Assembly (NCBI RefSeq): GCF_001194135.2
Contig: NC_068983.1
Coordinates: 32,187,944-32,251,943, forward strand
Source: Octopus bimaculoides
Lineage: Eukaryota
Direction of reading: 5' to 3'
DNA length: 64,000 nucleotides
Below, one piece after another: positions 41,978 to 57,000 of this stretch. The position numbers and the translations under genes were made by a program. The notes beneath the pieces were generated by a model, which saw only the letters and a program-made list of their open reading frames with translations, ran no database searches and had not been told where the DNA came from. Position 1 is the first letter of the stretch. Each line of letters begins with the position of its first letter.

Positions 41978-44880
41978 TCAACAAAAAATGACAGAAGAAA
42001 TGGCAGACTGAACAAATGATGAAGTCATACATTGTTGCATGGCTTTAAAAAATTGTTGTTATATTCAGCCCTAGTTCAACTTTGATCCTTCAGTAATGAA
42101 GACCTACATTATCTAATTCAATGGTACTCTTATTTTTGTAATGTTTGTTGCCATCATTTAGTGGTTAATCATTTTCATATATCTGATACAATGGCTGAAA
42201 TATATGAAATGTTGGTGGTCAGATAGAAGCACAGCTCTTCATTTATTTATTGATTTATTTTAATTTCTGGTTTGCTCTGATTGATAAGACTGTGTCCATG
42301 ATCATCACAGAGTCTTAGAGATTGGTAAGGTTAATATTTCTCTGTGAGTTAATGGCTGCAGGGAAAAGATGAGCTGAGAAGAAAGGATTGGGTGTAGTGG
42401 TTAATGTTAAATCTGGGGGTGGAGGTGGCAGGGACACAATACAGGAGATGAAAGGAGGAAAGACAAGTTAATAGTGCTGAAATGAATGCGGTACAAGACG
42501 CCAAGCACAAAAGAATAAAGGTCACTGTCGTCGTCATCATCATTTTATATCTGCTTTCCATGCCAGCATGTGTTGGTTGGTTTGACAAGATTCAATGGAT
42601 TAGAGGACTATGTCTTGCCCTAGTGTTCCAGTTTTGGCATGATTTGTATGGCTAGACACCCTTCTTAACACCAATCACTTTACAGAGTTTACTTGACTTT
42701 TTTTTTTTGTGGTGCCAGCAGTTAATGAGGTTACCTTGTAACTCAAGACTGAAGTGCTCTAATGACTGAGATGAAGGAAAAGAGATAAAGTGGATCTTAA
42801 GCAAGGTATTGAGAGATTAAAGTATGATGGGGAAGCAAGAACAGGTTTAATGTCTGTGGAGAAGATTCATGGCTACCTTGTATTTTACATAGGCGGATGA
42901 GAGAGGCTTAAGTGTCAATCAGACAAGTCCAAGAGATGTAGTATAGAAGACAGTTGAAGGCAGAAAAATCAAGTTAAGTGGTGAGTAAGGTTGTAAGAGT
43001 ATAAGAGGAGTTTCAGCTAATATAAACATGGGAAAAAGTAGGTCAGATATATATGAGATGAATGTAATGAATGGTGAACAGAGGTGGGTACATAAAGACA
43101 ACGAATGAATAGCAGCTGGCAGAGAATAGGGAGCAGTGACTAGCAATGCAGAAATTGTGATATGAGATGGTATATAGTAACAGGTTCTGCTTTCATTTTT
43201 TACAGTAGCAGAATAACATAGTAGAGAGGAGAGTGATGGAGGGATGGATGATAAGATGATGAGGGTGGGATTAGATATTGCAAAATAGAAAGAATATGAG
43301 GTGAATACTAACAAGAGTGGGGGAACTGATGGTAAGAATGAAGTGTAGGCATGTATAAGAAGTGATGGGGTTAGAGGCTGCAAGTTAGTGGATGTCAACT
43401 AGAGGAAGTTGTTGAAACACAGTGGACAACACTTCTGTGGACTATAAGCTGAAATGTGTTGGCGAGTGATTTTAATACCAATCAGTCAGGTATGTTTTTT
43501 GTGGAGTGGTGGGATGTACTGCATTGGGGATTCACCCAAGCTTTGTAATGGATTTGTAATTGTTAGTAGATGAATACTTTAGGAGAGATCTTCAGTGATT
43601 ATGAGACTCATTAATTTGTAATGACCTTGAGGGTTCTAGTTGTGAGCTGTTCGTGTTTAGGAGAGATTGATACAATATTGTGAAATGGAGTATGAGGTGT
43701 CAACATTGCATATAAAAGCTCGAGTAATTATAGAGGAATGGAAAATGGTATAATTTACATTGGAGTGGTATTTGTTGGTGATGATGGCAAACAGGTTGTT
43801 GATGTACAAATGTAAGAGTATCGAAGTGAAGTCGAATTGTAGGGCAAACCAGTGATATTTTTGCTGCTTTTTAATAAACATATATATATATATATATATA
43901 TATATTCATTAATGTAACTTAAATAACTCATAGGTTTCGGCCAGTATAGGCCCAGGCCATATCTAACTTAATAGCACCACCAGGTGGTGCTATTATATAT
44001 TTACAGGTATGTGTATGTCTGTTTGTCCCTCACCAACGCTTGACAATAGGTGTTGGTGTGTTTAAGTCCCATAACTTAGCGGTTCAGCAAAATAGTACGA
44101 TAAAATAAGTACTAGGCTTAAAATAGAAGTTCTGGGGACGATTTATTCGACTAAAACCCTTCAAGGCGGTGTCCCAGTATGATCGCAATTTAATGATTGA
44201 AACAAAAGAGAAAAGAGAATTAGGCGGATTTCTACTTAACGCATGGGATATAATCCCCTCGTAATTTTTTTTTATTTTATGGAATTTTTAGGAAATTTTT
44301 GCGAATTTGTATTCCACACACGGAAATTCATATGATTATGCAAAAGCCAAAATAAAAAAAAAATTGCCGCGTCATTTAAGGGCTATTTAGCTGTTATTTT
44401 TAGCACATCTCATGACCACCATACTCTCGTTTGTTTGTCAGTCTGACGTATTCATGTTTTTCGATATATTTCTTCCCATAAACACATTTAATGGTCTGTT
44501 CTTGGGATTTAAGCTATAAAGTCGTATTTTGGACTGTGATTTAAAAAACAAAAATTCGAAAAATTTTCTAAGATAAAAATTTTTCTCCATAGTTTTGTGA
44601 ATTCCCGTGTATAAAATACAAATTCGCAAAGAATTTTATGAAAATTCCAAATAACAAAAGTTGAAATCCAACAAAGTGCGGTTTGGGCACATTGTATAAT
44701 TTCCGACACATTAGTAATTAACTTTAACAAGACATTAATGTCTCAAATAAAATGACTTTATTATCTTGAATATAGTACTTACAAACGATTTAATTAATAT
44801 ATTACCTATTTCCCAAGATGGGAGTTAGCTCCCCTTATTTTCAGTATTTTGTCGGTAGATGGCAGTATAACCCAAGACTA

Positions 44881-44957
44881 TATAAAACGTGCCCCGTCCG
44901 TAATCCACCTCTTAGTTGCCATACTGTTTTAACAGGCGGCATATTGTACATTCTCAG
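44881..44957 (+). promoter_or_regulatory. RPLP0: TATA box + pyrimidine (TCT/TOP-like) start and non-coding first exon of the RPLP0 locus
   Basis: TATAAAA at 44881, cctCTTAG about 30 nt downstream, and donor cag|GTGAG at 44958. This is typical ribosomal-protein promoter architecture. Confidence 0.55.
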
Positions 44958-45270
44958 GTGAGAGCATTTTTTAAATTTAAGTCCATTCGATCTTTTTTTC
45001 TGTTAAAGAAGTACAACTTGTATTCATCATTTGCTTTTAACTGCAAAATTGTCGATGATTTAATCATGGGTTAGCGGATGATATTAGATTATGATTACAC
45101 GAGGGCAGCCTAGTTGGTATGAATGGATATAAGCATGGGATGCTTCTACTTAACGAAAGTTCTCCAAATTTTTAGTACTTTATAAATCTTTCCAAATTGT
45201 CTATATATATTATATCTAGGACAATTTTCTCTCTCTCTCTCTTTATATATATATATATATATATATATAG

Positions 45271-45302
<32 letters not shown>

Positions 45303-45376
45303 CATCTTTCTCTCTCTATGTATATATATATATATATATATATATCTTTTAGACTTAGTCTGTTGGCTAAAATGGC

Positions 45377-45613
45377 TACGACGTGATTTACAAGATCATT
45401 GCTGAAATAGTCTTGTAAAGTGGCAAACGGGAGCTGACTTTACTGTACTCTTCGGAGTATAGTTTTTTTGTGCAGTGAAATCCCATTCCACCATGTCGAA
45501 CATAAATACTTGTCCCCTGGTTTGCCAGCTGAGGACTTGAACAGGGTATATTCCATAACTTCTCGTAGTCTCTTTGACTATTACCGGGGAGTGAGACCAT
45601 ACTCGGTACAGTT
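45377..45613 (+). ncRNA. SNORA73: U17/SNORA73 (snR30) H/ACA processing snoRNA, copy 1
   Basis: 5' ACGTG...AAGTGGC as in vertebrate U17, H box ACATAA, m1 ATATTCC (45548), m2 AGACCAT (45594), ACA at 45608 plus 3 nt. The 3' hairpin parallels U17 (ATATTCC...AGTC...GAC...GGGGAG...ACCAT). Confidence 0.85.
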
Positions 45614-46862
45614 CCATCTATAAATACTACTTTCTTGGGTAGAAAGCCTACAGGATTCTCTGGGATATTTATTTTTTCATCAAGACTTGTTTGTTAATAG
45701 TTCATTTCTTCTGCTGTTATTGTAATTTGATAAATTGGATCGTTCCTCTAAGAACTAAGTAAAGAAAATATTTTTTTAAAAATCGAATATAAAGATTAAT
45801 ATATTCTCGATAAAGTAGATTAAAATTCAACAATGACTAGGTAAAAGTGTGATGGATTCCGGGCCACGTGCGTTATGGCGGGTGGCTGCTTACGTGGGTT
45901 ATTTCGTCGGAAATTGTTTTTCAAACCGTATGCTATTTATTTTAAGGCTAATTATAGTGTATACTCTAGGTATGTAGAGAAAGTGTATTTGTACACTTAA
46001 TTAATTTTTCTAGAAATTCTATTTAAGCCATGTGAATGAACTCTTTAAGAGCAGCTAAATATATTCCTCCCCCCAATCATGAACCATTCACTTGTATTAA
46101 GCATGGACAATAAAACGCATATAGTATATGTATCTATTCATTCTTGCCGGTATCATGTATATATTTACGCTTCGATATTAAAATTGCAAAGTGCAACCGA
46201 GACACCTGATTGTGCGGGTTAAATTTTGAATGGACAGGGATAACGTAGCTCTTCCCGATCGAGTAATTTGAATTCGCAAGAAGCCTCACTTAGTCAACGA
46301 TTTTCTACGCTTCTCTTAATCTCCTTGAAGCTGTACATTTCTAAATTCGAGTCGTGATGGAGTGGAACAAAAAGGTGAGTGTTTTAAGATGCAAATAGCA
46401 GCTATTCGAACAACTGCATTGTACTGTTGATGGCACTTCTTGAGAGTTTAGTTAATTTAAATGGCCTCAATCTTTTGGCGGGTTTTCAGAATATCCCTTC
46501 ATACACGAGGTGAAATTTCTCGATGCAAAAGCTTGAAAAAAATTCCATTTTAAGTGGAACAGCTATCTTAATAGTTAAATTGTTTTTTTCCGGATATCAA
46601 TTTTCGGTAAGTATAGTGTAATTTTTTATGCCTTCAGAAGGTGTATAGCTGATCATTTACCAAAGAAAAGAAACAGCATTGTAAGAAGTTTTAGGTTTTA
46701 GTATAGTTTTGGAGCTACGAAACTGCATTAGGCCAAAAGTATATTAAACGCAACTTCTTTTTCCGTTTAAGGTTTTTTTTTTTCTAACTACAATAATGGT
46801 TTAAAAAATTTCTTTTCAGATTTATCTTTAAATTGCTGTGGTGCAGTCCCTGATCCACCGAG

Positions 46863-49800
46863 ATGGTCAAGGAAGATAAATCAACCTGGAAAGCCAACTA
46901 TTTCATCAAGATCATTGTAAGTATAATTGTTTAATGTAAGCGTTTAACTTTACCGACGTGATTTATAGGATCATTGCTAAAATATCTTGTAAGTGGCAAA
47001 CGGGAGCTGACTTTACGTGCAGTGAAATCCCATTCCACCATGTCGGAAATAAATCTTGTCCCCTGGCTGCTTAAGTCGGGTGAGGACTTGAACAAAGTAT
47101 ATTCCATAACTTCTCATAGTCTCTTTGACTATTACTGGGGAGTGAGACCATACTCGGTACAGTTTTATCAAGTCTTGTCGGTTTATGACTATAGATGATC
47201 AGTATTTTAAAGTCTTCATTTTCTTTCAGCAATTGCTTAATGAATATCCAAAATGCTTCATCGTCAATGCAGACAATGTTGGCTCCAGGCAGATGCAGAC
47301 CATCCGTATGTCACTCAGGGGCTATGCAGGTGAGAAAATTTTAAATAGCTTCATTTTGTTTTTTGTTCGAGTCTCAATCACGTTTTCGGTTCAATTTCAT
47401 GTGTCCTATGACGTGGCGTGATAGTTCGTGTCACAAATAAAAATAGTGTTGTTCGTTTCCAATCTTTCATTGAAACCCATCTTGTTGGTCACTGAGAAAT
47501 ATTTTTGGAAACTAGTGTGGCTTGGTGACGGGAAGAATGTTAATAATTCTCAACGAATTTCATTTAATCTAAAAGGAAAAATGAACATTAAATTGGATAT
47601 AAATTTTGAGGTGTGATGATGAAGTAACTGCTATTAAGCGTTCGGCTCTTTGGCACTAGTTACCGAAAGGTTGAACCCACTAGTGTTTGCTGGACGCTAT
47701 GACAAAATGTAGCCAAGTATGGCTGTCTGAACACCCCTGAATACTAAGTATTTCAGCATGCTGTTGATATTACTGTACTGACTAATTTTCTTTTAATCAC
47801 ATTCAGTTGTCCTCATGGGTAAAAACACAATGATGAGAAAGGCCATAAGAGGTCATTTGGAGCACAATGCAGCCCTTGAAAGGTAAGTTCTAAATCTTTT
47901 CCACTGAAATGAGGTATGTATATTGCCAGTTTAGATTCAAATGTTGCTTGGGTTATTCTTGATCAGAAGCAATCTTGGACTGGTATAGTAATCGGTCACT
48001 TTTTGCCTTGTAGTATCTTTCATACTGGACACTACAACTTCCCCATAAGTGATACAATTCTTCTTTTTTTTAATTTTTTTTTCCCCTTTTGTTATATAGG
48101 GACGTGTAATTAAACAATGGTATCTCTGATCACAGAAAATAAATATTTATGCAACTATTGAAAAATATAACATTTAGTGAAGTGTTTTAAATGCAGATGC
48201 TGGCTTCACTCGTTTTTTTTTCTATTATAGCATTGGACCAGTCAAAGCTTTCAGACTGGAGAAGCTAGCCATGGTGTTTCATGCCTGTAAATGTCACTTA
48301 TGCATGCAGTGTCCATTCCCAATCTCTTGTGAAAATTCATCTTAGCTATGGGGAAATAACTGAAGACTGGTGACAGGCAGGGTGGCTGTAGAAAATCCAC
48401 GTGTAATTTTGTTCTACCCATTCCTCAATGGGAAAGTGGATGACTGTCAATCTTGCTCACCCCCCACACCTAACAACCAATAAAAAAAAAAGCTGGATAT
48501 AAGTACTGAGGTCAATTTTGTTTGACTAAGCCCTGTGTTGCCCTAGCATGGCTGCAGTTCTAAGATGAGTCTTTAAGAGGGTGATGTGTATAGTAATATA
48601 AAATGAGCACCTATACAAGATTTGCTTGATAATAGTGTTTAGTAATTGCCTTAATATTTAGGTTATTAAACAAAAACTTGTCTGTTGTAGGTTGCTACCA
48701 CACATTAAGAACAATGTTGGTTTTGTGTTCACTAAGAATGACTTGGCTGATATCAGGGATAGATTGCTGAATAACAAGGTTAGTTGATTTTCATTCCATC
48801 TACATATGGAGCTTTAATTTTGATTTTTTTTTTCTCCCCTCGCTACTGACAAATTGATATTTATTTATAGGTGAAAGCTCCTGCTCGTGCTGGTGCTGTT
48901 GCTCCTTGTGATGTGTTGATACCTGCTCAAAATACAGCTCTTGGTCCTGAAAAGACTTCTTTCTTCCAAGCTTTGTCTATCCCAACAAAAATCTCCAGGG
49001 GTACTATTGAAATCTTGAATGATGTCCGTTTGATAAAGGAAGCTGATAAAGTTGGTGCTTCCGAGGCTACATTGCTGAACATGTTGAACATCTCACCATT
49101 TTCATATGGTTTGGTCATTGAGCAAGGTAGGTTGGGCATTATTTTATTTTGCAGCCCTCAAGAATGATGAAAAAAAAGAATGACTTTCGCTCTACTGAAA
49201 GCTATGTAGATTCTTGTCCACTGACTTAAGGGCTATATTTATTTATTAGTGTCCTGTCTGGTTTATATTTAATTGTTATATTTAATGTTTTTAAAATTTT
49301 CTATACTAGTGTATGACTCTGGAACTGTTTTTGCACCTGGTGTATTGGACATTACTGATGATGATATCCGTAAGAAGTTCATGTCTGTAAGTACTTTTCT
49401 CATTTATAAACTCCTTGCAGAATGTTCAAATCTGCCTTCATCATGATATTCAAGTAATATATTTTCTTTGCAGGGTGTGACAAATGTTGCCAGCTTGTCT
49501 CTGGCTATTGGGTATCCAACTTTGGCTTCTATACCACATCTTCTTGTCAATGGCTTCAAAAATCTGGTTGCTATATCTTTGGAAACAGATATTGAATTTG
49601 AAGAAGCAAAAGAGGTATATTACATTTGAGTTTTTATATTTTTTTTTCACTTGGTAAATCTGTCAATATTACATGTTTTTATTGGATGATAATATGAAAA
49701 TGATTTGTATTTTCAGATCAAAGAGTTGTTATCAGATCCTGAAAAGATGGCAGCTGCTCTGGCAGCAAGTGCTGCTACTACTGCTGCTGCAGCTCCATCT

Positions 49801-49887
49801 ACCCCTGCAGCAGAAGAAAAGAAGGAAGAAAAAGTGGAGTCTGAAGAAGAGTCTGACGAGGATATGGGTCTTGGCTTGTTTGATTAA
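46863..49887 (+). CDS. RPLP0: 60S acidic ribosomal protein P0 (uL10), 320 aa, 8 coding exons
   Basis: Exons 46863-46916, 47230-47329, 47807-47882, 48691-48778, 48871-49126, 49310-49386, 49474-49614 and 49717-49887; all GT-AG and phase-consistent (963 nt). Reads [28 protein letters not shown]...RGTIEI...[24 protein letters not shown]. Confidence 0.98.
46952..47164 (+). ncRNA. SNORA73: U17/SNORA73 (snR30) H/ACA processing snoRNA, copy 2
   Basis: Paralog of 45377-45613. H box AAATAA, m1 ATATTCC (47099), m2 AGACCAT, ACA at 47159; ends 65 nt upstream of the 3' splice site. Confidence 0.88.
47610..47735 (+). ncRNA. SNORD22: U22/SNORD22 C/D processing snoRNA
   Basis: Terminal stem ggtgt/acacc, C box ATGATGA (47616), D box CTGA (47727), 126 nt. 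Internal AAAGGTTGAACCCACTAG matches vertebrate U22 AAAGGTGAACCCACTGG inside a long stem, and a short hairpin precedes TGTCTGA as in U22. Confidence 0.82.
47924..48059 (+). ncRNA. Canonical two-hairpin H/ACA snoRNA
   Basis: Hairpin 1 tgccagttta/tggactggta, H box ATAGTA (47985), hairpin 2 tcactt/aagtga and ttgtagt/actacaa, ACA (48054) plus 3 nt. Pocket strands tttgcc and cttccc are complementary to LSU GGGAAG-UC-GGCAA. Confidence 0.78.
49153..49234 (+). ncRNA. C/D snoRNA, SNORD59/snR54-like
   Basis: Stem agccctcaag/cttaagggct, C box ATGATGA (49164), D' CTGA (49195), D CTGA (49221). Guide ATGACTTTCGCTCT compares with human SNORD59 ATGACTTTCGTTCT; about 80 nt upstream of the 3' splice site. Confidence 0.8.
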
Positions 49888-49894
49888 AGATGAA

Positions 49895-49900
49895 AATAAA
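49895..49900 (+). terminator. RPLP0: Polyadenylation signal of RPLP0
   Basis: AATAAA 7 nt after the stop codon, followed by a T/GT-rich tract. Confidence 0.55.
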
Positions 49901-50992
49901 CATCACCTTCATCTTAAATTGGGTTTTTTGTTCTTTTTCAAAATTCAAATGTGGTTTATAAGTAATGGTTGATAAACTGTTCTTGTATCTAGTTTTCTTA
50001 GTGACAGACGCATCTCGGCAGTGGAAAAGTATTTTTTGAATTGATGGTGACTGAGGACCTGTATAGTGTATGGGTTTCACAAGACTGGTAGTTATTTGCT
50101 AATAGTGCTTTGAAGTAAGAATGAAACTATTGCTGCTAAAACTAGCTTCTAAACTGCACAAAAATATTGAAAACCCTTTGGTCGTGAATGAAAGTTCACC
50201 TCTGAAGTACAAATATACATCTTGATATCACCATTGCATCCAATTTCTACAGCTGGGTGACCTGGAACAACTTGAAATAAGTGTCTTAAGAATATGACAC
50301 ACCCTGGTATGGAAATTGAATACCCTCCTGGTTGAGACATGCTCTTACCACTGAGCCATGCACATGCATGACTACACACACTCCTCCCTATGTAATTGGA
50401 GGTGCTGTTTGGGATATATCAGGATTCCATAAACATTCTGCAATTTTAACGTAGAAAGAGGAAGTTGACAGTAAACTACAAAGCTGGCTGACAGATTGCC
50501 TTTACACTAAGCAATTTGGGCTTATGGTTCTATTGCTGTTTACTTATGAAACCAATATAAACATGGATGAATACTTAAAAATTTGGTTCGCTTTCTATTG
50601 AATTGGAAATAGTGTGACTAGTGGATGTTACGTCAGTGTAAATGGAAAGTCCAAAGTAGCTAAAAGCAGGAGTTACTATTCTGAAGTTGTACTTGCTATC
50701 CATAATAATAGTTCATAGGTGCAGGAATGGCTGTCTGGTAAGTGGCTTGAAGCCAAAAACAAGGGAAAGAAAAAGCAAGGGCTCTACCCTGGTGGTTGGA
50801 TGCCTATCCTTCAGGAAAGCCATTACAAATTGCATCTGTGATGAGCAATGCTTTAATCGAACATTGTAAATATGAAATTATTATTGTATATTTAAAATTG
50901 TAAGTATTTAATCAATACAGCTACTTCACCCCTTTTATGTTTGTCCTTGTTCGTCCCCTCTTTGTAATGCCTTTATGGCAAATATGAAATAA

Positions 50993-51126
50993 AGAAGCTT
51001 GCTTACCAACCACATAGTTCCGGGTTCAGTCCCACTGTGGCACCTTTGGCAAGTGTCTTCTATAGCCTCTGGCCAACCAAAGCCTTCTGAGTGTATTTGG
51101 TAGACAGAAAATGAAAGCCCATTGTG

Positions 51127-51158
<32 letters not shown>

Positions 51159-51370
51159 GTAAATATATATTATGTGTCTGTGCTTGATAGAAGCCTGTCG
51201 TGTGTGTCTGCTAGTCCCTCCAACATAGCTTGGCAACCGATGCTGGTGTTTGTCTACGTAACGTAGCAATTTGGCAAAAGAGACAGAATTAAGTCCTGGG
51301 GTCAATTTTTTTCTCGATTACAGGTGGTGCTCCAGCATGGCTGCAGTCAAATGACTGAAACGAGTAAGAG
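50993..51370 (+). mobile_element. tRNA-derived SINE
   Basis: Same family as 3517-3868, with an internal (TA)n. Confidence 0.75.
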
Positions 51371-52861
51371 AATATGGCTAAGCCATAACATGGATTACAA
51401 CAATGAGAGAAAATTGCTCACTTACAAACTTTGCATTTATAACAAAACCTTACAGACTGCAGCCCTTAAGATCTTGACCAATCCTTCATTGCTTTCACTT
51501 TTGAACAGTAATAGCTTCATTTGGAATATTTTCACAAGCTTAATTTAACTATACAGTGAATTGTCAAATGTTATATACCCATGCATTTTCAGTCTCATCA
51601 AAGTCCCCTAATATGCTGTCCTGATCTGTGGCATATCCCTCAAATGAACTGTCACACAAACTATTGCTTTACATGTAAAATAGAGGAAAGTAATTGGCAA
51701 CACTTGAATTTGTTGCTTGTAATTTGTACCTTATCCTAGCCATCTTTGACCCTTATGTCTGTCCTAACGGGTACTAGCTGAACCTTTCCTTGAATGTCAA
51801 CCCTTTAGAATTCCTCTGCCTAAACCCCCACCTCCATAACCTTCAGCATTAAAAGAGCATGAACTATATTATTACTGGTTTTATAGGGCTGGTTCAGAGC
51901 ACAATTAAATCCCCCATCTTGAGGTTAAAAGAAAACTTAGTCAGTGTATAAACTCAGCCTACTTTCTAAAGTTATACATCAAAGGTCAGTTTTATAATTT
52001 CATACAAGGAATAAAATCGACTTTAAAATAGATTTATCCAATCAAAAATTTTTATTATTGCATATAGTGAACGATAAGTACACAGTAACACATTTCTGTG
52101 GTGTAATGCATTATTTTGTAATGACAGTCTCCACTGAATATTTTCTTCATGAGAGGAAGTTAACTGGTCAACAGGAATATGGGATTGAATCCAAGTTGTG
52201 CTTGTCTCAGCAAAAACAGAAGTATGTGATCAGTAATTTGTGTATGACTTGTTTATTGTAGCTGTAATTATTTTCAAGACATGAAGTTATTTCCCTTCTG
52301 ATAACCGATTGAATTTGTAGTCATAAGTGTCTAGTATTTTCTCTTTCATTGTACCTGATAGTGGAAAGTAAAAGCTGGTGTAATCAAGTTGATTGTTCAG
52401 TGCTTTCCTGTCTCTGAACCGTTAATATACCACACTGTATAGTCTCTCTTTTAAGAATAAAATGTTTTTTGTCACAATACTTAAAAAACATTTTTTCAAC
52501 AAAATGAGACTATTCTTACATTCTGAATACTTTTTGTATTTTTAAAATTCAGCTTCTTAGTCATGTTATGTCAGATGTCAACATTTAGCAAACTGAAGAT
52601 AATTGGTATCTGTAAATCTTTGACATTCTCAATTATGGTTTCTTTTTTATTTTTTGGTTCTTACATAGTTCCTTAATGTTTCAGTTATATCTTATTAAAT
52701 ATAACCTGTGTGAATCTATAAATAGCAATAGTGCTTGCCATTTCCCTGGTTTACAAGTAGCTATGGGAAAATGTCACATAGCTTTAATCTTGTCTTCAAG
52801 GATTTCCTATGACGCTTTTGGGTACCAAAGTGCAAAACTTGCCTACTAGAAGATATACATA

Positions 52862-54016: not shown

Positions 54017-57000
54017 CATACATGTATGCATACATACATTTATAAATTCGAGTTTGTTTGAGACCTGCATTCTAAATATTCAGGTGATTCAAGCCGAGCT
54101 TTAGAGGAAGGTGCAAAGAACCATGTATAGCATAAAAGAATATCTTACTCAACTTTTAAAAATTTTCTTTGAAAATATCCATACACAATACTGTATTAAT
54201 GTGTATAAGTATTGTAAATGAAATCTTTTTTTTTTCTCTAAGTTTTTCCAATGCCTATTGCTGTTCTCAATACACATCCCATTACTTTCTACCAAAATCT
54301 CAATTATATTTTAAATAAATTAAAACACTTGGGCAATCTTGCTCATTATGACATGGTAATGAAAGAATTATGGGCAGAAAGATTAGCATTTAGTTGGATA
54401 GTCCATATTTATAGAGTAGGCAATTTCTTTGCATTATTTTGCAAAAAAAAAAAAGGTAGAAATGGATGCAAATTTGTTATATAACAGGCAGAATTCTTAT
54501 TCTGAAAAATACAATATTTCAGCCCAAGTATTTTATTGATCCTGGAAGGTTGCAGGGCAAAGTAAACCCCAGTAAGCCATTCTACTTGGAGTGGCAAAAG
54601 TGATATAATAGAAATTAATTATTATATACTTGGCACATAAAAAGCATGTGCCTTACTGGCACATGAATGAAACATTCGAGCTAGGTCGTTGCCAGTGCCA
54701 CTGGACTGACTCCTGTGCAGGTGGCATGTAAAAGACACCATTAGAGTGTGACCTTTGCTAGTACTGCCTGACTGGCCCTTGTGCTGGTGGTACATAAAAG
54801 CACCCACTACACTCGGAGTGGTTGGCGTTAGGAAGGGCATCCAGCTGTAGAAACTGTCAGATCAGATTGGAGCCTGGTGCAGCCATCTGGTTTGTCAGTC
54901 TTCAGTCAAATCGTCCAGGCCATGCTAGCATGGAAAGCAAACATTAAACGATGATGAATCATATATCTCTGCTCTTCTAGAATTGCACTGTGCTGGAACA
55001 GCAACTTCTAGATATAATTCAAATATAACCTATCAGATCATTAACATGGAAGAATGTGATTCAGCCTTCGTTTAGTATGCTTGCTTGGAACAAACTACTA
55101 ACCCTGTGAAGTTGAACTGAGTACAAATAAATGAAAGACTCATCAGTTATGTAGTACTGTGACTGCTTGGTATCACACTATTTCCATATTGTACCTGCTT
55201 ACAATTAAATGTCATGACATTAAAAACACTCCTGTTAAGAGAGTAAACTCCTGACCCTTCAGCTCGCAGTTGCTATGCAATGAAACCATAGTTATAGTAT
55301 TCAGGAAAGACCTCTTACCTCAAAGAAATGCCTTTTCAGCTGTTGCTTGTTTAAAATGTCTGAGTATTTTGTTAATACATAATAATCAGAGCCAGAGGTG
55401 ATTATTCACAGGGTATTTTTTTTTACCAGTTCTCATGAACAATAATGATAGCTAAAATATTTATCAATGTGCTCAAAGAAACATCATACCACCAATAAGG
55501 TAGCTGAACGTTAAATTAATTCTAATGTTGTTTTTGATTTACCGGGCGCCGTGCTTAAAGAGCGACAGCTGCCACCGGTTGTTAAAAATTGCGTCTCCGA
55601 AATCTCTTGATTGTGATTCCGCCCAGACGCTCGCAAATCGGCAACTGGGTGTCACTGACGACAAAGACCCTTTTAATAAGTTAACATTTCAGTAACTGAT
55701 ATATATCGTTACTATAATAACTTTAAAGTGATATTGCAATGCAAGTTCTGCTTAAAATTTAAATAAGATCTCAATACAAGCGAATATAATTACAATTTTC
55801 GATATTTACAAACAATATCTAATAGTTTTCTGCTAGTAGTTAATTATTTTGTTTTAAAATAAGCTAGTAAAATATCAAAAAAATTCCTTGCCATGTACTT
55901 ATTCCCAGTCAATCTTTTCTAAAATGTATCCTATGTAAGGGAGGTAATTCATAGCAAATAGGTTCGCTCTTTAGAGATGGCATACTTTCATTGAATGTCA
56001 GTAATAATTGAATTAATTAAATAAAAATAAATAAATCGCTTCTACTAACACATGACTCGTGACTCATACTTGATAATTTAGTTTATATAAAGGTATTCTA
56101 CGTTTGTGAAAAGAAAATCCCGTTTCACTATCTTAAATTTGTGCGTGTTTTCGAGCGACCATTAGCTTTGATTTTTACCAGTTCTTTCTTTCAACCACTA
56201 ATTTTCAGCTACGCCTTTTCTACTCTAGGCAGAAGGCCCGAAATTTTTGGGGAGATAAGATCGATCTCAGTACTTAACTGGTACTTAATTTATCGACCCC
56301 GAAAGGATGGAAGGCAAAATCGACCTCGCCGGAATTTGAACTCAGAACATAAAGACAGACGAAATACCGCTAAGCATTTCGCCCGGCAACAGCTCTCTCT
56401 GTCTGCCGAATATTACTTGTGTTAAAGTTTGTTGACTGTACATACGTAAGTTATGATTAAAAAAAAATTAAATTGGCATCCCTGCAGGATAGAATGTGAA
56501 ATTATCGAGTACTTCCAAAATAATAATTTCTTCGGATCCATGTTTCACGCATCGTAGATTATGAATCTGCAATTTTGGGTGGGGTGTGTAGACCCCCTTT
56601 CCGTAATTTTTCAGTTTTTACTTTCTTTTGAATTATTTGTTTAAATTATACGTAACAAAATTATACATAAGCATAAGTCCGAAAAAAAAAATCAAAGCTG
56701 AAAATTTACGGAAAGTGGAGTGGATTTTGCTCCTCTTTCGAGAAAACGCGGAGTAGATAAAACAGGGGACAACTGATGAAGGGAATGTTCTTTATGTTCC
56801 CTTTCTCGTTTCTCTATTTGTTTCTTTCGTTGTTCGAAAAAAGTTAGTTTTCTATGTTTTTGTTTTTATGTTCACGTTTTTTGACGTCCTTGTACCCATA
56901 TATGCATGTATATATACATATATAACTAGGTATGTACATATATGTATGTATACATGCATATATTTATATATTATTTATATTATTATATATATGTATATAT

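Follow-up and report, generated by a model that had tools for sequence, protein, structure and literature searches.

Octopod RPLP0 introns carry five small nucleolar RNAs, among them a U22-like RNA that looks ancient in the RPLP0 genes of protostomes

The 64,000-nucleotide (nt) stretch of Octopus bimaculoides DNA analyzed here (the window; contig NC_068983.1, positions 32,187,944 to 32,251,943) contains the gene for the large-subunit stalk protein RPLP0, and introns 1, 2, 3, 4, and 6 of this gene each harbor one small nucleolar RNA (snoRNA), all on the plus strand. The RPLP0 model was built by hand and consists of eight coding exons specifying 320 amino acids, with GT-AG at all introns. A 1,044-nt transcript contig from a close relative (L037, ~97 to 99% identical) confirms all splice junctions and joins exon 1, in the 5′ untranslated region (44924 to 44957, plus strand; 3′ end exact through this contig, true start further upstream), to exon 2 (46820 to 46916, start codon at 46863). 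A block around exon 1, 44908 to 44963, aligns with the octopod Argonauta hians. Intron 1 spans 44958 to 46819 (plus strand, GT...AG, junction taken from the same contig). The gene model and the contig likewise define exon 3 (47230 to 47329), exon 4 (47807 to 47882), exon 5 (48691 to 48778), exon 6 (48871 to 49126), and exons 7 to 9 (49310 to 49386, 49474 to 49614, and 49717 to 49887), all on the plus strand; the two short introns among these last three exons carry no snoRNA.

Rfam covariance models were scanned over the window at gathering thresholds and, permissively, over positions 43000 to 51500, with the E-values of the permissive scan multiplied by 4,227 families. The RPLP0 protein is 90% identical to its Argonauta counterpart, and in a sensitive blastn comparison of the window with the Argonauta RPLP0 locus, the five snoRNAs were the sole intron blocks that aligned. 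Because the rest of the introns cannot be aligned, the five predictions represent more than chance. The original prediction, made from the sequence alone, had named five snoRNAs in these introns, and all were present on the plus strand at the predicted coordinates. It had also placed three of them 65 to 80 nt upstream of 3′ splice sites; measured distances are 65 nt for the second U17 copy (U17b), 71 nt for the U22-like RNA, and 76 nt for the SNORD59-like RNA, with the first U17 copy (U17a) at 1,206 nt and the H/ACA guide at 631 nt. In Argonauta, U17 occupies the same two introns and the U22-like RNA the same intron as in the window, together with two H/ACA copies and two SNORD59-like copies. 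Following the general route of intronic snoRNA biogenesis, RNA polymerase II would transcribe RPLP0, the five introns would each release one snoRNA, and each spliced intron would be trimmed back to its small nucleolar ribonucleoprotein core.

Only a few snoRNAs are required for 18S processing, U22 among them, and reviews describe U22 either as restricted to vertebrates or as metazoan-specific with no invertebrate examples named. Intron 3 of octopod RPLP0 carries a C/D snoRNA of 126 nt (47610 to 47735, plus strand), identified by its fold and by a permissive match to SNORD22, the Rfam family for U22 (29.5 bits, E = 0.0046, spanning 47611 to 47735). Its C box (AUGAUGA) lies at 47616 to 47622 and its D box (CUGA) at 47727 to 47730, the terminal stem is GGUGU/ACACC, and a loop, GAACCCAC, occupies 47673 to 47680. 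There is no free guide beside the D box and no D′ box, and for this reason the RNA is probably a chaperone. A U22 counterpart would act on precursor ribosomal RNA (pre-rRNA) as such a chaperone and not as a methylation guide, and the GAACCC loop is likely its working part. The conserved loop with its flanking GCUGG had no consistent complement in 31 metagenome ribosomal DNA (rDNA) loci, most of which lack external spacers.

Although the original prediction called this RNA U22, the Rfam cut-off was missed, and support for the call comes from architecture, the conserved loop motif, and covariation. Because its score lies below the gathering value, we refer to the RNA as U22-like and a probable orthologue, not as a curated member of the family. 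When SNORD22 is taken as a single family named in advance, the E-value of the window match is ~1e-6. Folded independently, the octopod RNAs and the SNORD22 consensus of Rfam adopt one common shape: a terminal stem carrying the C and D boxes; a long central hairpin in two tiers, within which a small hairpin with a GAAA or GUAA cap is nested; a single-stranded segment, GAACCCA; and a short hairpin immediately before UGUCUGA. The stems of the U22-like RNA and of the consensus differ in sequence, but pairing is kept. With the boxes removed, local similarity to the consensus exceeded that of 5,000 of 5,000 dinucleotide shuffles for the window RNA and 4,947 of 5,000 for the Argonauta RNA, and in both octopods its start, position 43, is equally far from the C box. 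When the central domain, vertebrate consensus included, was aligned by MAFFT on sequence alone and analyzed with RNAalifold, the same helices were recovered with 19 pairs, 11 of them compensatory. SNORD14 was considered for the Argonauta copy (17.4 bits) and rejected, as both U14 domains complementary to 18S are missing.

RPLP0 loci of two octopods, a nemertean, a mussel, a tick, a fish, and five insects were then compared. Covariance model R1, derived from the octopod pair, scored 45 bits (E = 3e-11) inside RPLP0 of the nemertean Tubulanus polymorphus, and the Tubulanus RNA alone folds into the octopod-type structure. A second model that adds the Tubulanus sequence gave sense-strand intronic matches in all insect RPLP0 loci obtained, representing five orders, at 38 to 58 bits (E = 1e-8 to 1e-14): two copies each in the damselfly Ischnura, in Thrips, and in the cricket Anabrus, and one each in the wasp Diachasmimorpha and the midge Chironomus. 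Models R1 and R3 together place U22-like relatives in RPLP0 of eight species. No comparable match appeared on antisense strands, in flanking sequence, or elsewhere in the 64-kilobase window. The same models found no match in RPLP0 of the tick Ixodes, the fish Albula, or the mussel Mytilus. The Albula result is expected if SNHG1 is the home of vertebrate U22; absence from Mytilus is weak evidence, because that locus lacks the exons for residues 50 to 155. An RpLP0-hosted snoRNA is not mentioned in the main text of the Drosophila papers searched, and the insect RNA is likewise unmentioned in the papers searched; a database may nevertheless already contain it as an orphan with a different name.

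Eleven sequences were assembled into an alignment (A11) that was fitted to the model structure, which inflates pair counts; in it, 89.5% of cells are paired and 27 of 31 pairs have changed on both sides. None of 500 shuffles reached any of five measures, and sliding the partners by one to three columns reduced pairing to 34 to 41%. Based on these slid controls and on the independent single-sequence folds, we hold the covariation signal to be real despite the fitting. In A11, the conserved positions fall in the C and D boxes, in GAA(U)A, which caps the nested hairpin, and in the loop GAACCC.C (all 11 sequences).

The intron used is not fixed. The U22-like RNA lies after residue 51 in the octopods, after residue 155 in Tubulanus and for one Anabrus copy, after residue 217 for one Ischnura copy, in the last intron (after residue 270) in four insects, and after residue 18 in Chironomus. 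The two Thrips copies share one intron (L045, 4455 to 4935), and those of Ischnura (L040) and Anabrus (L042) sit in different introns. Copy number and intron thus vary, and the host gene is constant. Roughly half of the copies lie 60 to 90 nt from the 3′ splice site and the others 400 to 600 nt.

Several observations weigh against equating this RNA with vertebrate U22 or against its long residence in RPLP0. The window RNA scores 29.5 bits against a SNORD22 gathering value of 50, and the Argonauta copy, at 13.7 bits, falls below its own spurious SNORD14 match. Vertebrate U22 entered every comparison as the Rfam consensus and not as individual sequences, and the fitting of A11 counts here as well. 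Copies in Argonauta (417 nt), Tubulanus, and Ischnura lie 400 to 600 nt from the 3′ splice site, a distance not usually optimal for C/D processing. The gap in the Mytilus locus belongs to the same side of the ledger.

An alternative origin would make the 126-nt RNA a member of an orphan C/D family specific to protostomes and residing in RPLP0, its likeness to U22 in length, hairpins, and GAACCC loop being convergent or coincidental. All protostome copies score under the SNORD22 gathering value (29.5, 13.7, and, in Ischnura, 23.7 bits), Tubulanus has no SNORD22 match at E ≤ 1, the hosts differ (RPLP0 here, noncoding UHG in vertebrates), and the reviews confine U22 to vertebrates or call it metazoan-specific. 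Nevertheless, we consider an unrelated family unlikely given the ~1e-6 expectation for one prespecified family, the similarity at the same C-box offset in the same structural context, and the 5′ motif GUCUUA that insect copies share with the vertebrate consensus. Specifically, SNORD22 is the best snoRNA family for one Ischnura copy even at its 23.7 bits, below the gathering value of 50, and that copy shares GUCUUAC..CUGU with the consensus. On balance, we lean toward U22 being an ancestral bilaterian snoRNA that protostomes have kept in the introns of RPLP0 for over half a billion years and that sits in SNHG1 in vertebrates, with GAACCC.C on a covarying two-tier hairpin as its functional core. 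The U22-like RNA has probably lived in RPLP0 since before the divergence of molluscs, nemerteans, and insects, moving between introns, and its association with the gene looks protostome-wide and ancient and not a cephalopod invention.

The two U17 copies are the most secure of the family assignments, and we regard this call as solid. U17a lies in intron 1 (45378 to 45613, plus strand; 74.6 bits, E = 5e-16) and U17b in intron 2 (46953 to 47164, plus strand; 93.2 bits, E = 3e-21; aligned with Argonauta), so that both window copies reach the SNORA73 gathering score of 74 bits, in line with the two U17 genes of the original prediction. The Argonauta copies score 74.1 and 72.4 bits, the second slightly under the cut-off. 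In U17a, the m1-like element AUAUUCCAUA lies at 45548 to 45557, the m2-like element AGACCAU at 45594 to 45600, and ACA at 45608 to 45610; the corresponding positions in U17b are 47099 to 47108, 47145 to 47151, and 47159 to 47161. All four octopod copies have a hinge H box (ACAUAA or AAAUAA) and ACA plus 3 nt at the end, and the m1 and m2 variants AUAUUCCAU(A) and AGACCAU are invariant in all four. Both elements belong to the internal loop of the 3′ hairpin. The usual forms, m1 AUAUUCCUA and m2 AAACCAU, occur in nearly all eukaryotes tabulated, and variants of them are matched by changes in 18S (PMC7601244). By analogy, octopod 18S is predicted to carry complements to the octopod variants; complements such as AUGGAAUA and UAUGGUCU are present in 18S genes of metagenome eukaryotes, none of them octopod. 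Through the m1/m2 loop, the two U17/snR30 copies would pair with rm1/rm2 in 18S expansion segment 6, and this pairing would permit early 18S cleavages.

The window paralogues are 91.9% identical to each other, orthologues 83 to 85% (84.6% for U17a and the Argonauta intron 1 copy), and cross-pairs 82%. These values indicate that the duplication predates the Argonauta split, with some homogenization since. Elements remote from a splice site, namely, U17a, far inside intron 1, and the H/ACA RNA at 631 nt, could be decaying duplicates and not working snoRNAs. U17a is barely at the gathering score and has a 26-nt insertion in its 5′ hairpin, and Argonauta has additional copies of the H/ACA and SNORD59-like RNAs, of which one is separated from its splice site by 649 nt. 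We nonetheless find decay very unlikely. U17a retains its H/ACA boxes and the invariant m1/m2 elements, its position is kept in Argonauta at 84.6% identity within flanking intron that cannot be aligned, and the pocket strands of the H/ACA RNA are invariant except for one pairing-compatible C/U change. Moreover, H/ACA processing is less position-dependent than that of C/D RNAs.

The original prediction had also listed two modification guides, and both have genuine folds, one H/ACA and one C/D, with plausible rRNA targets. The H/ACA guide in intron 4 (47923 to 48059, plus strand, 137 nt; the "136-nt" species of that prediction) was recognized by its hairpin-hinge-hairpin-tail fold (z = −2.6), with the H box AUAGUA at 47985 to 47990 and ACA at 48054 to 48056, 3 nt before the end. 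No Rfam family matched it at E ≤ 10 in a 211-nt search. The strands of the 3′ pocket, UUUGCC and CUUCCCCAU, with the pocket top 16 nt from ACA (14 to 16 nt being usual for such guides), are conserved between the window and Argonauta, while the apical stem varies. Against the large-subunit (LSU) rRNA sequence GGGAAG-U-C-GGCAAA, this pocket forms 6 + 6 Watson-Crick pairs in the window and 7 + 6 in Argonauta; none of 60 pocket shuffles reached its score (closest, 11.5 versus 12), and the target is present in all LSU-bearing rDNA loci of the metagenome scan. It is thus plausible that the 3′ pocket guides pseudouridylation, and the RNA would target the U of the conserved 28S GGGAAG-U-CGGCAAA. The CCGUAACUUCGGGAUAAGGAUUGGCUC block follows directly 3′ of the predicted site, GGGAAGUCGGCAAA. 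The 5′ pocket lacks conservation, and no convincing or conserved target for it was found in the metagenome rDNA. An equation of the predicted 28S site with yeast 25S pseudouridine 2314 (snR86) was dropped, as the sequence context did not fit.

Downstream of the H/ACA RNA, the 631 nt at 48060 to 48690 cannot be aligned with Argonauta, where the splice site is 71 nt away. One 59-nt piece of this segment recurs at 51290 to 51347, and the segment is probably an insertion of repetitive DNA; a short interspersed nuclear element was suspected in this part of intron 4, backed by just that one repeat match. In Argonauta, the second H/ACA copy (L001, 7764 to 7900) sits one intron further along, with 76 nt between it and the splice site.

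Intron 6 carries an 80-nt C/D snoRNA (49154 to 49233, plus strand) with a match to SNORD59 (23.8 bits, E = 0.3, spanning 49156 to 49231) that misses the gathering score of 45, as do the two Argonauta copies at 27.7 and 28.6 bits. The C box lies at 49164 to 49170, D′ at 49195 to 49198, and D at 49221 to 49224. The guide upstream of D′, AUGACUUUCGCUCU, does not vary among the three octopod copies and agrees with the SNORD59 consensus at 12 of 14 positions; its methylation-selecting nucleotide is C, against U in the human guide, and the octopod guide therefore fits only an 18S with G at the site of human A1031. The SNORD59-like RNA would aim at the 18S site corresponding to human Am1031. This assignment is weakened if octopod 18S has A there, which would leave a C-A mismatch at the target. 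The guide pairs perfectly over 13 to 14 nt with the 18S variant AAGAGCGAAAGUCA in the 31 metagenome rDNA loci, a circular result because the loci were picked by that very pattern; 31 of the 34 matches in that scan were rDNA, so G-bearing 18S exists in nature. In two of the metagenome 18S genes (L002 and L021), conserved sequence ends right after ...GGTTCGAAG, with unrelated sequence beyond, which suggests an insertion, possibly an intron, just past the SNORD59 target site. The second Argonauta copy shares its intron with the first and lies 649 nt from the splice site (L001, 8370 to 8452). Two snoRNAs per intron are unusual in animals.

Among the RPLP0 loci compared, only those of the two octopods yielded U17, H/ACA, and SNORD59-like cargo: none of the three had a match in the Tubulanus or Mytilus locus, and SNORA73 and SNORD59 had none in the Ischnura locus. 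This part of the cargo would predate the split of Argonauta and the window species. The Tubulanus gene has a SNORD15-like match just upstream of the start-codon exon (52.8 bits, cut-off 75; L036, 3494 to 3649) and several weak C/D-like matches in its introns (snoR38, snoR69Y/SNORD29, and U61-like), and the nemertean cargo therefore differs from that of octopods.

According to the original prediction, "this lineage placed" 18S-processing RNAs under the promoter of a large-subunit gene, forming a "compact ribosome-biogenesis unit." The first part fails for U22, because the same RNA also lies in the RPLP0 genes of Tubulanus and of insects from five orders; the data agree with it only where U17, the H/ACA guide, and the SNORD59-like guide are concerned. 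With the Rfam models it proposed for these introns, SNORA73 scored at or above gathering and SNORD22 and SNORD59 below. Its account of separate human hosts, with U22 in UHG and U17 in U17HG beside RCC1, is correct. Read at its strongest, the proposal is that the cephalopod lineage assembled a dedicated unit of two 18S-processing snoRNA families under the stalk-protein promoter and that co-hosting was selected. Two U17 copies and the U22-like RNA are indeed co-hosted in both octopods, and U17 is absent from the nemertean, mussel, and damselfly loci. However, the U22-like RNA was in RPLP0 long before cephalopods, U17 switches host freely in vertebrates (RPS8, RPS7, and a noncoding host), and any highly expressed ribosomal-protein or terminal oligopyrimidine (TOP)-type gene gives equal co-regulation. 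We give a dedicated, selected unit little credence; of the 18S-processing RNAs, U17 is the only one whose placement in RPLP0 by this lineage is plausible. Overall, we are fairly confident that RPLP0 is an ordinary but richly loaded host of intron-encoded snoRNAs whose cargo appears to be of mixed age.

Other features were noted around the gene. A long (CT)n/(TA)n microsatellite at 45215 to 45345, just upstream of U17a, forms a perfect palindromic hairpin and produced spurious matches to the mir-3149 and mir-1277 families on both strands. A gene for U11, a small nuclear RNA (snRNA) of the minor spliceosome, lies at 55542 to 55675 on the minus strand (94.5 bits, above the Rfam gathering threshold), ~5.7 kilobases downstream of RPLP0 and on the opposite strand. 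U11 and ~155 nt upstream of it (conserved flank to 55830) align with Argonauta (L001, 13858 to 14173), and the RPLP0-U11 neighborhood and a probable snRNA promoter are therefore conserved.

Intron-encoded snoRNAs in ribosomal-protein genes are textbook knowledge. In Drosophila, 27 ribosomal-protein genes host snoRNAs (PMC2246290), and U17 resides in all six introns of Xenopus RPS8 and also in Fugu RPS7 (PMC7601244). With such hosts and the frog and pufferfish U17 genes already known, the octopod locus is a new example and not a new kind, and the biogenesis unit of the original prediction is likewise not new in kind. The added value lies in the U22-like RNA, a covarying family present in molluscs, in a nemertean, and in insects of five orders, in each case within RPLP0. 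It offers candidate U22 orthologues in genetically tractable insects and a short conserved loop, GAACCC.C, as a candidate contact with pre-rRNA. As none of these RNAs reaches the SNORD22 gathering score, threshold-based annotation will miss them. The pairing of U22 with RPLP0 would rank among the more durable associations between a snoRNA and its host, set against a literature that emphasizes how mobile snoRNAs are, and, if an ancestral bilaterian U22 is accepted, U22 was neither a vertebrate nor a late-metazoan invention.

RPLP0 is a habitual snoRNA host in animals. Introns of the sponge gene, RPP0, host SNORD83-like orphan C/D snoRNAs, and there, too, the same host gene carries C/D snoRNAs in different introns depending on the species (PMC3412847). 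We rejected the sponge RNAs as members of the U22-like family, since the sequences are those of another RNA: the GAACCC loop and the central hairpin are missing, and a guide, ACUGCCUUCCUU, is present at the D box.

The octopod SNORD59-like RNA resembles SNORD59, the guide for human 18S Am1031, in having its guide upstream of D′ with 12 of 14 positions shared; it differs in its C in place of U, which predicts Gm, in its score below the cut-off, and in its host. The human SNORD59 host is ATP5F1B. For U17, the closest parallels are Xenopus laevis RPS8 and Fugu RPS7, in which U17 likewise lies in introns of a highly expressed ribosomal-protein gene and is freed when the introns are processed, in multiple copies whose within-species paralogues are closer than orthologues (PMC7601244). 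The octopod arrangement departs from Xenopus RPS8 in that the host is RPLP0, of the large-subunit stalk, with two U17 copies and not six, and the octopod m1 AUAUUCCAU(A) and m2 AGACCAU depart from the usual AUAUUCCUA and AAACCAU. Finally, the U22-like RNA differs from vertebrate U22 (SNORD22, in UHG/SNHG1) in its protein-coding host, in its C box (the canonical UGAUGA, against UGAAGA in the vertebrate consensus), and in its sub-gathering score, and a role in 18S processing outside vertebrates is putative. The two nevertheless share a length of ~125 nt, C and D boxes with no obvious methylation guide, the two-tier central hairpin with a tetraloop hairpin nested in it, GGU(N)GAACCCAC as a loop, and the 3′ hairpin directly before UGUCUGA.

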